The notes under the pieces: model-generated | Databases searched by the model: none | What the model was told of the DNA's origin: nothing | Seen by the model: only the letters and a program-made list of their open reading frames with translations | Shown: piece after piece, positions 16,304 to 45,906 of the stretch | Layout of the letters: every line of letters begins with the position of its first letter | Numbering within the stretch: the first letter of the stretch is position 1 | Program-made: the position numbers and the translations under genes | Assembly: GCA_964252035.1 (NCBI GenBank) | Contig: OZ176204.1 | DNA from: Podarcis erhardii | Lineage: Eukaryota | Length of the DNA stretch: 64,000 nt | Reading direction: 5' to 3' (one strand)

Positions 16304-16308
16304 CATGC
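16304..16308 (-). promoter_or_regulatory. RBFOX-type GCAUG motif at +15 to +19 downstream of the micro-exon
   Basis: Minus strand gtactgacttgtcaGCATGtgctt. Downstream GCAUG is the canonical RBFOX enhancer position. Function is inferred. Confidence 0.5.
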
Positions 16309-16322
16309 TGACAAGTCAGTAC

Positions 16323-16334: not shown

Positions 16335-17151
16335 CTGATGAGAGGGGGAAAGGTTAGGAAGAAAGGGAAGAAAATGAGCAAAGGTTTGGTTATAGAAACA
16401 AAAAGAAAACAAAAACAAAATAATTACAAACTGTACATCATTAGAGGAACCACAGAATAAAACAAATAAAGAAAAAAACCCAATTCATGTCTCAGGAACA
16501 AGATACTGCTGCACACCTTAGAACCAAGAAATAAAAGGAGGCACAAATGGTCAGTGAGTTACCTGCCAAAACATAATAAAAATTAAAATTAGTAGTTACT
16601 AAATTAAAGGGAAAGAGAAAGAAAGACTTCCATAATTCCATCAGTTTATGCCAACAAAACCAATATGCCACAAAGCTTTGACAAGAGCTGGGAAGTGGTA
16701 GAAGGGAGGCTGCTCACAGATATAAAACAATGTTTGGAAGAGCCTACAGCATCTTTATATTGCAAGCACAAACCCTTAACAATATATTTCCTTATGCTTA
16801 AAAAGAGATGAGTCTTCCCTGATGGGCAACATCTGTATTGGGCCTGAGGCACAAACCAATTAACCACTGCAGTTAAAAATTAATGGCTAACCCCAGGTTA
16901 AAATCTAAGATCCAAATATATCACAGGCAGCTGTCCAAGTCCTCCTGTAGGACTAACATCCTAGGAATGAGCGCTAACAGCTGAACTTGAAGTGGACTGT
17001 AAAGGGCACAGGCACGTTTTTTGTCAATCAATACTTTTTCCTGGAAGATAGAATGGCCTAGTTCACATATAAGCCAAACCATGAGCGTGAAGGGCTCCCG
17101 GACAGATTGCAGGTGCTTTGCTGCTCCTCAATCCTGGCGCTCCACTGAAGT

Positions 17152-17330
17152 GAGCTAAGCCATGGTGTGACTCAGTGTGTTGTCCATGCTTGAGGTTCAT
17201 CTCCTTCCAAACAAGCCACCAGCTGTAAGCACGGTTTATTTTTGGGTTACAGCTGGTGGCTTGTTTGGAGTAAGGCAAACCATAAGTCTGGGTTTAGGAG
17301 ACATGCTGAAGTCAAACCATGCCTTAGCTC
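17152..17330. mobile_element. Palindromic (foldback) MITE-like element
   Basis: Outer arms gagctaagccatggt / aaccatgccttagctc, and a perfect inner 23-bp inverted repeat (17206-17228 and 17247-17269). Confidence 0.65.
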
Positions 17331-19308
17331 ACAAAAGCAGCAGCAAGAACTGAGAAGGAATGAAGTGCCCACGATCTCCTCTCTGAGAGCCAGCACACTC
17401 ATGCTCAGCCTTTCATGTACACTGAGCTATGGAAGCAGTATGTCAACTGCTGATCCTTTTCAAGCTGCTGTATATTGTAAAGGCAAAAGCAGCAGTTTCA
17501 TACATATTGACATGCACGCCTCATGACTAATGCATTCCGGATTTGGGTTTTCCATGCCCAAGAAGCCACCCTAAATCAATCAGAACAATTTGCTGAAGCA
17601 AACAGCAAACAAAGACGTCTGGAACTTGACTGAGGGAGGGAGAGCAAATGCCCGCTGTATATTCCATTGTGGAAAAATACGTTCTTTTAGGCAGCCCAAT
17701 GGAATTTCTCACAGGTTATGTCCTTAACAGTTCGAATTTTCTGTCAACGGTGTGGTACAGTAAATAAATATGCAAAGAACCACCTGACAGAGCACATCTG
17801 TCACAAAAAAGGTCATCAAAAAGAGCTGAAACAATTATGCAGCACAAATTCAGATTATCTGGATAGATTCAGTAGGATTGGTGGCATTATATATATATGC
17901 ACATAAATAAAAACAGATCTGTAGCAAGATCTGAAATTTCAGAACAGCCAGTCCGCAGGGGCAAGAAAATATGCTTAGTGTCTATTATTGCAATGTCAGT
18001 TAGCCAACTTGCCTTCAGGCATATCCTTGTCCGCAACACTATAAGCAGCAGGGTAGACTATTGCAGTCAATATTATATTCAAAACAGTCATAAACAAAGT
18101 CTTGATCACATCCCAGGATAACCAAGAAATAGAAGGCTGTACAAATTAAGGTGTGTGGCTTTGCAGAGAGGATTAATGCCCTATTCTCCAGGCCCACCCA
18201 TATTCCTGCCATCACTGCTGTGCCCGACAGCAGCTTAAACTGAGAGCAGCTCAGTCCAAGCCAGAGTTACTATTGCCAAGTCAAAAAGAGTCCATCCTCC
18301 TCTTCAGCTGGCCAGGAGCAGAGGCAGATGGTGACACCATCCCATGTGTGCAATGAGCAAAGTGGGACGGGAAGGAAGAGACCAGTTCCACACCCTACGG
18401 CTGCACAGCTTGGCGGAGAAAGATGGTTCCCCTCCCCTCCGGAGGCAGGCTGGTGGGAATGGCACTCCATCTCCAGACTGAGCAGAGCGGGCCTGCCTCT
18501 GAAGAAAGAGGGGGGGGGGAGCGGCCAAAGCTGTATTCTGGATGTCAGCTCTTAAAAGCACAGCAGCAACTGTGCACTTCATTATAGGTCAGCCCAGTAA
18601 TGAGACAAAGCAGGAAAGCAGTAAGCAAATTTGCCTTTGCCTGAGAGTGCTGCTCAATGAAATAAAGAGCAGGAGGGACAAGGAGGCAAATGCAGCTTTG
18701 GAATTCTGCATCTCTTTCTTATATATACAGTGAAAGAAGTTAAAAAGAGCTTGGGGAGGGGAATTCCACCTTCCCATTGATGGTATTTGGAGTTTAAAAG
18801 TTCAATTTAACACTGAATCACTGTGGGAGGAACATGTTTTACCCTAGATATAATATTGCGAACAAAGCTATGTTTCCTGCAGGAAATACATGATTTGAGA
18901 GGAAAGATCCTAGTCCTAACTAAGATGGAGAATGCAACAAGCTGTGCTTGCTCTTGTGTGTCAGCAGTGGAGACACAAAGGATGTCTGCTCTCCCAAGGT
19001 GAGGAGGAAGGAGAAAATGAGGTCAGCAACTGCAAGAGTATCCGTCTAGCCTGAAGGAAGGGCAGCACAGGTAAAAGGGCAGTCTAAGCAGCTTGGAGGT
19101 TCCTTTCTCTTTCCCCATGCAGATGCATCAACCTCCAGCGCAAGCTGACTTGCATCCAACACCCATTTGATTTTTAAGAGACATAAAGATTTCACACACT
19201 GAATTTCTATCACAGGTGAAAAGAACACCACTCAGGTGAAATTATCCCGAATGAGAAAGGAAAGTGCCAACTTTGCCACAACTATTCTTTGGAAGCTGCA
19301 GCTAAGTA

Positions 19309-19665
19309 CAGTGGTGCCTCGCAAGACGAAATTAATCCGTTCCGTGAGGCTCTTCGTCTAGCGGTTTTTTTGTCTTGCGAAGCAAGCCCATTGACAGCTT
19401 AGCGGATTAGCGCTATTAGCGGTTTAGCGGCATTTAGCGGATCAGCTGATAAGCGGCTTATCAGCGGATCAGCTGATAAGCGGCTTAGGGCTTAGGAAAA
19501 GGGGGGGGGGAGGGAAAAAAACCCCGCAGGAACTCGCAAGACATTTTCATCTTGCAAAGCAAGCCCATAGGGAAATTCGTTTTGCGAAGCGCCTCCAAAA
19601 CGGAAAACCCTTTCGTCTAGCGGGTTTTCCGTCTTGCGAGGCGTTCGTCTTGCGGGGCACCACTG
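19309..19665 (+). mobile_element. pogo/Tigger-like MITE, family B (CAGTGGTGCCTCGCAAGACG)
   Basis: About 22-bp TIRs, TA TSD, internal TTAGCGG-like tandem core. Second copy at 60569-60921. Confidence 0.9.
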
Positions 19666-20016
19666 TATTAAAATTAACTGTGCTAAATCAGATCAAAGAT
19701 CCACCTAGACCAGCATTCTGTTCTCACAGCAGCCAGCTAGATGCCTATGGGAAGAGCTAGAGCTCTGTTTTTTATTCTTAGATATGATTCTACATTCTTG
19801 GTGCTGCGCAAGCCGGGCCAAGAGAGGCTGTTTAGAATCTCAAATTTAGTCCCCTTCTCCGTGGTGGCCCATAAAAATTCCCTGCTATAATCACCTCCAA
19901 AATTAACACAGCTTTGCTTACTGCTAGACAGTTTCACAGACAGAGAAGAGAAAATAAACATTTCCTTAGTAGCTAAAATGGTAATTAGCATGCACCCACA
20001 GGTTTAAGAATCTCAC

Positions 20017-32790: not shown

Positions 32791-32977
32791 CTTACGGTCC
32801 CGAAATCCAGACCGCTGCTTCTTCTTCTTTTCTTCGACCGGAGCATCTTCATCGCTTGACTCAACAGCTTTCCCATCATCACTTCCTTCATTCACTACTT
32901 CTTCTCTGTTCTTCATCTTCTCACCAGGCTCTGCCCTTATATCATGTTTCACAGATGATGGTGCTTCTGCATGGGCT
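32791..32977 (-). CDS. MICU1: MICU1 exon 3 (variable linker and polybasic KKKKQRSGFRDRK)
   Basis: Acceptor ttgttttctctcAG|A GCC CAT, donor AAG|gtatgt. 187 nt, phase 2 to 0. The AG|A junction restores Arg. Confidence 0.96.
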
Positions 32978-44200: not shown

Positions 44201-45906
44201 ATTTTCCTTTGCCAATGTATGAGTTAGTCTCTTGCCCTCAGCTATTCAACAGAAATAAGGGAAGCTAAGTTACTAACACGACTTTAGGACTTTAGACTTT
44301 GGGATGTCCTCCAATCCTCTTTGAACTCAGGAAGAACCTATACACCAACACTTGAACCACCTATACAGATTCTTTAGTCTTGTCAGTTTTCTATTTAATT
44401 TGGGGGAAGAGAAAGAATATTTACTCAAAGTTTATACTTGTAGCAACTCTGAGGAAGCTCCACATTACTAGCTCAGGGCAAGTAAATTGGACAGGATTCT
44501 GCAGGCACAGAACAATATTACTAAACTAGAGACAACCATCAACTGTATCTGGAAAATAACCATACGAGGGACCAGCTCACACACATCAGCTTTTGAAGGG
44601 AAGATAAGTGCCTATGACCCAGGCTTGCAAATAGCCACTGGCCTGGGTCACTTGTGATGAGCAGGACTCACTTCCAGGGTGCTCTCAGGTCATCTACACA
44701 CCCCAAGTGTACACATGGCTGGGAAAGTCAGAAATGTTTGTGGTCTATTGAGAATGGCTTTAAAAGGCTGCTAATAAGGTGTATGGTCGACATATTCTGA
44801 GCAGTCAACTACAACATCCAACTATATGTCCGCCAAATGCCTCCCTATGTTTTTAGGACCATGCTGTTCACTAAGAAGAACACAACTGTCAGGCAGATGC
44901 CTACCGGGCATGCAACATATGCATTAATATTCAAAACAAGGCTTGGAGGAGTGAATGTGTTACAGAAAATCTAGCCCACAGAGAACAAGCCTTCCTTAGT
45001 CACTGCTTGAAAATCTCAAGAAGCCCTAACACTTAATGAAGCCTTCTTCCAGCCCAATAGTATTGGAGATTGGGAGAAGCTAGGGAATTGAAGAAAAACT
45101 GCAGCTGTAGACATGGAACTGAGGCAAGGATAAATGCCTTCTAGCAATGAACAAGCTAGATGGAAGATTAGTATGCCTGTCAATGTTCAAGAGCCTTAAT
45201 TTCCATTTATAGAAAAAATTGCCCTCCACTGTAAAGTTTAATTGCTCTCACCTCAGCCTCATATAGCTTGTAAAAGTAGATCTCTCAATATCCATGTTCC
45301 TAGGTTACTTCTATTGCCATTATGAAACCTTAAGGGTGGGTTGGGGGAGTCTGCTCTGAAACTGCATCATGTAACCTCTACAGATGTCTTTCCATTCATG
45401 AAAGACAACTCCCATTTCAGCCAACCAGAATGTTAGAAATGTTTTCCCTAGATGGGTTAAGAACTGCAAGTGTCATTTTGTCAGCAACTTCTGTTGCCCA
45501 TCAACAGACTCTGTATTTGCAGCTGGTAATGACTAGGCACCTTTACCACTGATACAACAATTGTCTAGGCAGAAAGCTGTCTGGGAAGAACTTCTAAAAG
45601 CATCACATCTTAACTTTAGCCTTGCCAAGCTCCTGTCCCACAGCTTCCCCTCCTAGAAAACCTTGTTAAGCTACAACTGGGAAAGCATTATTGTTCAGCC
45701 TGGTGCAGAAAAGACTTTTGACTCAAGCACTGCATAGAAAACCATGCCCAATCTTTCTATGCCGGGGAGAGGAATGTTTTTCAGCCGCAGGGCTACATTT
45801 CTTTCTGGGCAACCTTCCAAGGGCCACATGCCAGGAGTGGGTGAGGCTAAAAGCAAAAATGGGGCAACAAATGTAAGTTTTACCTTTGTATAGTAGGCTT
45901 GTTTCA

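Follow-up and report, generated by a model that had tools for sequence, protein, structure and literature searches.

The window analysed here is a stretch of 64 kb, and its minus strand represents part of the MICU1 gene (Table 1). The exon 3 peptide was compared with annotated MICU1 proteins. It was identical in Podarcis muralis and P. raffonei, and the identity was 97% in Lacerta agilis and 92% in Zootoca. Intron 5 is 16 kb long and holds the micro-exons 5' (DFWQ) and 5'' (TE). About 40 nt on each side of the TE micro-exon were nearly identical in Python and Protobothrops, and its fish counterpart was ACGGAG. GCATG, the RBFOX motif, was located 14 nt 3' of the DFWQ micro-exon, at 16308-16304 on the minus strand.

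Table 1. Positions of the MICU1 exons, the shadow copy of micro-exon 5' and the neighbouring conserved blocks in the window
Feature	Position	Strand	Remarks
MICU1 exon 3	ends near 32791	-	
MICU1 exon 4	~27014-26853	-	
MICU1 exon 5 (…LGLDQFVVKRYDGK)	20060-20017	-	phase 0 at end; donor AAG/GTGAGA
Conserved intronic block TTTTGTTGGCATAAACTG, upstream of shadow	16640-16662	-	three-way identity 0.83
Acceptor-like pyrimidine tract ending TAG (AG at 16600/16599)	16599-16630	-	pyrimidine fraction 0.90
Pseudo-exon, 36 nt TAACTACTAATTTTAATTTTTATTATGTTTTGGCAG, ending ATGTTTTGGCAG	16563-16598	-	between AG at 16600/16599 and GTAACT
Shadow 12-mer TTTTGGCAG/GTA	16560-16571	-	exact match to true micro-exon junction
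Donor-like hexamer GTAACT after CAG	16557-16562	-	8.66 bits by crude weight matrix
Conserved intronic block CTTTTATTTnTTGnTTCTAAGGnGTnCAGCAG…TTCCTGA, downstream of shadow	16490-16535	-	three-way identity 0.78
MICU1 micro-exon 5' GATTTTTGGCAG (DFWQ)	16334-16323	-	12 nt; weak donor GTACTG
MICU1 micro-exon 5'' ACAGAG (TE)	5219-5214	-	6 nt; flanks ...cgctag/ and /gtaacag
MICU1 exon 6	~3900-3790	-	

Both micro-exons are known from mammals. Micro-exon 5' encodes EFWQ in mammals and gives the MICU1.1 isoform, and exon 5'' (TE, 6 nt) gives MICU1.2 and MICU1.3 (PMC8909990). Inclusion of exon 5' in humans is driven by RBFOX2, and QKI, PTB and MBNL sites have been predicted for the micro-exon (PMC8909990). 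Among 389 MICU1 proteins, those of squamates carried only four kinds of insert between …KRYDGK and (K/R)ISQEREKF, namely none, DFWQ, TE or DFWQTE. These are the same four combinations as human MICU1, MICU1.1, MICU1.2 and MICU1.3 (PMC8909990). DFWQ isoforms were annotated in many squamates, birds, turtles, frogs and fish.

Several other elements were observed around the micro-exon. A small inverted repeat, CTGAC-TT-GTCAG, lies directly 3' of the true micro-exon donor at 16304-16319 on the minus strand and runs into GCATG. It was retained in both snakes (python has TTGAC, where U·G can still pair) and was absent from the bird. Another inverted repeat, at 17184-17291, has 45-nt arms that are 78% complementary and an 18-nt loop. 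It gave weak microRNA-precursor-like Rfam matches, the best of which reached 30.5 bits against a gathering score of 97. The segment at 19243-19806 is a high-copy repeat, probably a short interspersed element. Its summed contig depth ran from thousands into tens of thousands in each of the four sequencing runs, compared to 0-8 in the remaining intron.

An earlier note on this DNA had described a shadow copy of the DFWQ micro-exon, exactly 240 nt upstream of it. The quoted sequence and coordinates proved correct, since ATGTTTTGGCAG is located at 16574-16563 on the minus strand and GTAACT follows at 16562-16557. The shared word is the 12-mer TTTTGGCAGGTA, which is composed of the last nine exon bases of the micro-exon and the first three bases of the intron behind it. 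It was found at 16571-16560 and 16331-16320, and these were the only two matches in the 64 kb when both strands were searched with at most one mismatch. The 240-nt distance between the two 12-mers was exact. As this equals 80 codons, the shadow and the true micro-exon stand in the same reading register. CTGAC and ttgtgc had also been named as motifs common to the two copies. Both motifs were present in both copies, but they were out of register. CTGAC was positioned at +4 in the true micro-exon and at +9 in the shadow, and the TTGTGC match (ATTTGTGCYTC) showed a spacing of 256 instead of 240.

On the minus strand, the order of the elements was the pyrimidine tract ctttctttctctttcccttt, aatttAG, the 36 nt TAACTACTAATTTTAATTTTTATTATGTTTTGGCAG and then GTAACTCACTGACCATTTGTGCC. 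Read in the phase in which exon 5 ends, the first codon of the 36-nt unit is TAA, as had been proposed, and a TAG stands in frame just before it. ACTAAT-N2-TAAT, which is a branch-point or QKI-like arrangement, was contained in the unit. By direct reading, its interior was U/A-rich and lacked a purine-rich enhancer. No AG was located immediately 5' of the 12 bases of the shadow.

Candidates of other kinds were tried at this site. An Rfam search at the shadow gave no RNA family match, and the 391-nt region folded no better than its shuffled versions (z 0.35). These results spoke against an intronic RNA gene or a stable structure, and both were rejected. A role of the shadow as branch point of the true micro-exon was also rejected, because several AGs lie between the two sites and the AG-free zone before the micro-exon acceptor is 96 nt.

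The strength of the splice signals was then compared. Donors were scored using a crude weight matrix of classical 5' splice-site frequencies, and the figures are approximate. The shadow donor CAG/GTAACT scored 8.66 bits and was 6th among the 880 GT sites of intron 5. The true micro-exon donor CAG/GTACTG scored 4.50 bits and was 73rd of the same 880 sites, which confirmed the earlier statement that the shadow has the better donor. The exon 5 donor scored 10.79 with the same matrix. The pyrimidine fraction of the shadow acceptor tract (0.90) was in the top five of 996 intron-5 AG sites and equal to that of the true micro-exon. When the shadow's own values were used as cut-offs, the 64-kb sense strand gave two acceptor-donor pairs at exon-like spacing, the real exon 5 and the shadow. 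Since these were the sole pairs, the splicing machinery should notice the shadow. There were 11 acceptors and 35 donors at these cut-offs, from which about 1.2 chance pairs were expected in 64 kb. This meant that the shadow was a good pseudo-exon and not a statistical anomaly. A same-strand twin within 300 nt was found for 0.27% of the non-repetitive 12-mer positions of the window. Based on this rate, the chance that at least one of the ~20 words that overlap the micro-exon has such a twin was ~1-6%, judged post hoc.

Comparative analysis was conducted with the loci of Python bivittatus (L001), Protobothrops mucrosquamatus (L002), a fish (L003) and the bird Chlamydotis (L006). The loci were found via a search with exon 4 alone, which gave partial MICU1 gene models. 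The lizard side of the comparison consisted of the window and its near relatives, and the Gekko kuhli locus, with its 10-kb flank, stops at exon 5. A word search for genomic contigs of other lizards with a spurious open reading frame spanning the true micro-exon gave no match. A metagenome scan for a squamate-conserved 22-mer adjoining the micro-exon also gave no match.

Lizard and snakes were clearly homologous over a region that extends from ~330 nt before the micro-exon to 80 nt behind it. At the true micro-exon, the three-way identity was 12/12, with 0.90 for the acceptor flank and 0.83 for the downstream part including GCATG. At the shadow, the three-way squamate identity was 0.30 in the pyrimidine tract and 0.44 across the 36 nt, and the 21 nt after the donor had 0.14. 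The shadow thus sits in a conservation trough, where tract and 36 nt show 0.30-0.44, between the two blocks of ~0.8 listed in Table 1. The snake homologues of its 12-mer were TTGTAGCAGGCA and TTGTTGCAGGCA, in which 9 of the 12 positions were retained. The core read TTATGTTTTGGCAG/GTAACTC in the lizard, TTATATTGTAGCAG/GCAACTC in Python and TGATATTGTTGCAG/GCAACTT in Protobothrops, and GCAGGYAACT was common to lizard and snakes. The donor GT was GC in both snakes (CAG/GCAACT), and the donor T was the sole change in a 9-mer that was otherwise conserved at 8/9. One position of the 12-mer differed across all three species, being G in the lizard, A in python and T in Protobothrops. The lizard ATG was ATA in both snakes, and TTTTGG was TTGTAG or TTGTTG. 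In the snakes, gaps or unlike sequence stood opposite the lizard acceptor AG and a large part of the 36 nt, and a TA-rich stretch replaced the pyrimidine tract in Protobothrops. A second donor-like site, AAG/GTGTGC, was found at 16516 on the minus strand, inside the downstream block and 46 nt past the shadow donor. It scored 8.32 bits, and the snakes read AAGGAGTTC there, without GT.

A counterpart of the shadow was also sought in the bird and the fish. None was recognisable in these two loci, and the true micro-exon was the only match. TTYTGGCAGGT gave one match per locus in the two snakes, the bird and the fish. Cross-species alignment had been suggested in the earlier note as a way to check the element. 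Run on the two snakes, the bird and the fish, it went against the proposal, as the splice dinucleotides were not kept and no bird or fish counterpart was found.

Further observations were made on the bird side. In a stretch that resembles the 16490-16535 block by eye, the bird has TAG/GTACCT, and the bird alignment upstream is unreliable. In the Chlamydotis locus (45061-45069 and 45205-45213), GTACCTGCC, 136 nt upstream, was the perfect reverse complement of GGCAGGTAC, which comprises the micro-exon end and the donor there. Pairing of the two would form a 9-bp stem, which is absent from lizard and snakes and could mask the micro-exon 5' splice site in Chlamydotis. The crocodile and many birds are annotated with an alternative exon of 22-23 residues (I[RQL]VKFSSKLLAELIPNLQ…) between exons 5 and 6 (proteins P0300, P0304, P0309, P0313-P0317 and P0321). 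This exon occurred in no squamate product. The bird locus did not show it either in the 5.9 kb that separate exon 5 from the micro-exon, and for this reason homology of the shadow with the archosaur exon was rejected.

Transcript evidence was taken from the contigs of four runs, whose RNA nature was a guess and in which rare forms are dropped. In X1, X13 and X14, the depth of exon 5 was 43, 14 and 42, respectively, compared to 0-8 for the intron, which was RNA-like. The contigs of the four runs, taken as RNA on a guess, contained no joint at 16599/16598 or 16563/16562 and none that linked 20017 to one of these sites. The missing joints are an absence of support and not a refutation, since a decay-targeted form would be rare. 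X1 (organism A, ~2% diverged) contained a 682-nt contig covering 16256-16926, which spans the shadow and the true micro-exon and is colinear with the genome over both. A contig of 171 nt in X15 (organism D), covering 16550-16709, was colinear as well and ran 13 nt past the shadow donor. It was the only unique contig of X15 in a 4.2-kb stretch. Because X15 had no exon 5 coverage, this contig was probably derived from DNA.

The shadow donor was intact in two close relatives, and conservation within ~2% divergence is uninformative on constraint. Organism A carried nine extra bases, CTAAATCTC (minus strand), after donor position +7, at 16555/16556 of the window. They matched ATAAATGTC of python, found directly after AACTC, and were absent from the window's species and organism D. 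This match indicated that nine nucleotides were recently deleted in the window's species and in organism D and that the spacing is not constrained. It also meant that CTGAC lies so close to the shadow donor because of this deletion.

The flanks of the two copies were aligned with each other. Free local alignment of 150-nt flanks, with random intron pairs 240 nt apart as background, gave p values of 0.17 upstream and 0.10 downstream. Alignment within a ±20 band gave marginal values (p 0.02-0.14, with 0.02-0.05 for 60-nt flanks). Since the flanks lacked significant alignment, a duplication could not be demonstrated. The 9/12 retained in the snakes makes an old relic possible.

Based on the above results, we consider the shadow to be a lineage-specific pseudo-exon, that is, a cryptic splice-site pair in the regulatory intron of the micro-exon, and its resemblance to the micro-exon to be due to chance or at most a relict, with a probability of roughly 0.6. 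Here we infer non-use or neutrality in addition to the sequence, the signal strength and the non-conservation that were directly observed. All the tests of function in this analysis came out negative or silent. A good acceptor-like and a good donor-like site may have been paired by chance in the weakly constrained gap between the conserved regulatory blocks. The 12-base identity would most likely have been reached via few substitutions, or via retention, on the short, partly conserved core GCAGGYAACT. The shadow probably has no regular function. At most, the 36 nt might be included rarely as a cryptic exon, and the TAA-stopped transcript would be removed by nonsense-mediated decay. One point counts against the pseudo-exon reading, as a 12-mer twin so near the micro-exon is expected by chance in only a few percent of cases.

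The main rival is a working poison or decoy exon specific to lacertids or lizards. U2AF and U1 would assemble on the 36-nt unit, and the outcome would be a TAA-ended, decay-targeted MICU1 transcript or a competition with the weak sites of DFWQ that tunes its inclusion. The acceptor and the donor, each in the top 1% of the intron by the crude scores, the uniqueness of the pair besides exon 5 in the 64 kb at those cut-offs, the perfect bipartite ACTAAT-N2-TAAT motif and the donor intact in two close relatives argue for this idea, as does the location in the regulatory intron region of a micro-exon controlled by RBFOX2 (PMC8909990). However, the splice dinucleotides were not retained in the snakes, the segment was not recognisable in the bird and no junction was present in the contigs of the four runs, insofar as these are RNA. 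The U/A-rich interior without a purine-rich enhancer and the 9-nt indel just past the donor among close relatives are further points against it, and the donor conservation within ~2% divergence tells nothing of constraint. We therefore regard this reading as unlikely. The earlier note had suggested a poison exon as well. Its splice signals and premature stop were present, but GT and acceptor were not kept in the snakes, the interior reached an identity of 0.44 and no junction was seen. The more specific idea, in which the 36-nt decoy or poison exon evolved in lacertids by mimicking the DFWQ exon end and donor and competes with the micro-exon or diverts transcripts to decay, appears improbable. 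The shadow could also be what is left of an old tandem duplication that included the micro-exon and its flanks. In this case, the upstream copy would have decayed, with loss of both acceptor and reading frame, and would still resemble the exon end and donor. This would be compatible with the pseudo-exon reading. The element order was the same in both copies (pyrimidine tract, TTTTGGCAG/GTA, CTGAC, ATTTGTGCYTC), the banded 60-nt flank alignments were marginally above background (p 0.02-0.05), and the 9/12 match of the snakes to the micro-exon junction suggests that some of the resemblance may predate the lizard-snake split. However, the unrestricted alignments were not significant (p 0.10-0.17), the motif spacings were unequal (+4 and +9; 240 and 256), the proximity of CTGAC stems from the recent 9-nt deletion, and the bird and the fish showed no second copy. 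In addition, pyrimidine tracts and CAG/GTA are generic splice-signal sequences. Such an origin is rather doubtful.

Two other readings of the earlier note were found to be unlikely. In one of them, the shadow is a zero-length recursive site, so that exon 5 would be joined at 16562, regenerating AAG/GTAACT, and the remaining intron would be removed in a second step. The tract …TTATTATGTTTTGGCAG/GTAACT has the required motif, a pyrimidine tract with CAG and then GT, and a TACTAAT branch-point-like motif was located 26 nt upstream of CAG/GTAACT together with a U-rich tract. However, GT was GC in both snakes, the tract was only 0.75 pyrimidine with GG at -5/-4, and the first step would remove just 3.7 kb of the 16-kb intron. 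No joint between exon 5 (20017) and 16562 was found in the contigs of the four runs, again guessed to be RNA. A recursive site is thus very improbable. The other reading, which has hardly any probability, takes the shadow as the end of an alternative first exon, where ATG TTT TGG CAG would open a truncated MICU1 without a targeting peptide. The ATG shares the reading frame of exon 6, and the sole unique contig of X15 in the 4.2-kb stretch covers 16550-16709. However, this contig runs 13 nt beyond the donor and is more likely DNA. The ATG is ATA in both snakes and has a poor context, with T at -3 and +4. The G+C content around the site is ~0.40, and the 200 nt upstream were not conserved. The last of the four readings in the note was a decoy donor or a relic of a local duplication. 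The decoy donor or relic, possibly dead, fits the evidence and is the only part of the four readings that does so. The duplication itself is not demonstrable, because the flanks gave no significant alignment. The note also knew of no description of such a paired element in MICU1. Full-text searches of the literature for MICU1 combined with poison exon, with cryptic exon or with microexon yielded no account of a paired or decoy element.

The shadow was compared with known systems. Like MICU1 exon 5', it has the same intron, strand and frame register, the same last nine exon and first three intron bases, and an upstream pyrimidine tract. Unlike exon 5', it has no AG directly before its 12 bases and no GCATG downstream, and the unit that does have an acceptor is 36 nt long and starts with a stop codon. 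Exon 5' is identical at 12/12 in the snakes and occurs from fish to birds. In contrast, the shadow was not conserved beyond close relatives and appeared in no annotated isoform. The TE micro-exon is a second alternative micro-exon of this intron. However, it is located 11 kb downstream of DFWQ and not upstream, its sequence ACAGAG is unrelated, and it is conserved with snakes and fish. Intronic pseudo-exons are reportedly decoy splice-site pairs that are normally ignored. The shadow resembles them in its good acceptor and donor at exon-like spacing, its enhancer-poor interior and the absence of any sign of use or conservation. It differs from them in that it is unusually short (36 nt) and high-scoring and lies beside a regulated micro-exon whose junction it mimics. 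Decay-inducing cassette exons are said to occur in SR-protein genes, and like such poison exons the shadow would place a stop codon in frame, well ahead of the last exon junction. The known regulated examples are, as a rule, highly conserved and observed in RNA. In contrast, the shadow was neither highly conserved nor seen in RNA, as far as the contigs of the four runs represent it. Known vertebrate recursive sites reportedly occur in very long introns. The shadow shares with them the juxtaposition of 3' and 5' splice-site motifs (CAG/GTAACT). However, its intron is short, its tract is weak and its GT was not kept in the snakes.

Were the shadow in use, the DFWQ micro-exon would be one of the rare micro-exons controlled by a decoy that mimics them, and this would be relevant to the tuning of mitochondrial calcium uptake in muscle. 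A lacertid decoy or poison exon, if true, would place the MICU1.1-type isoform of muscle and brain under a further, lineage-specific level of control. As by-products, the analysis gave a map of the blocks conserved in the intron around the DFWQ micro-exon of squamates and the position of the TE micro-exon in the window, and squamate annotation was found to show the same four isoform combinations as in humans. The evidence on the shadow points instead to one more intronic pseudo-exon, which suggests that very good splice-site look-alikes arise beside regulated exons.
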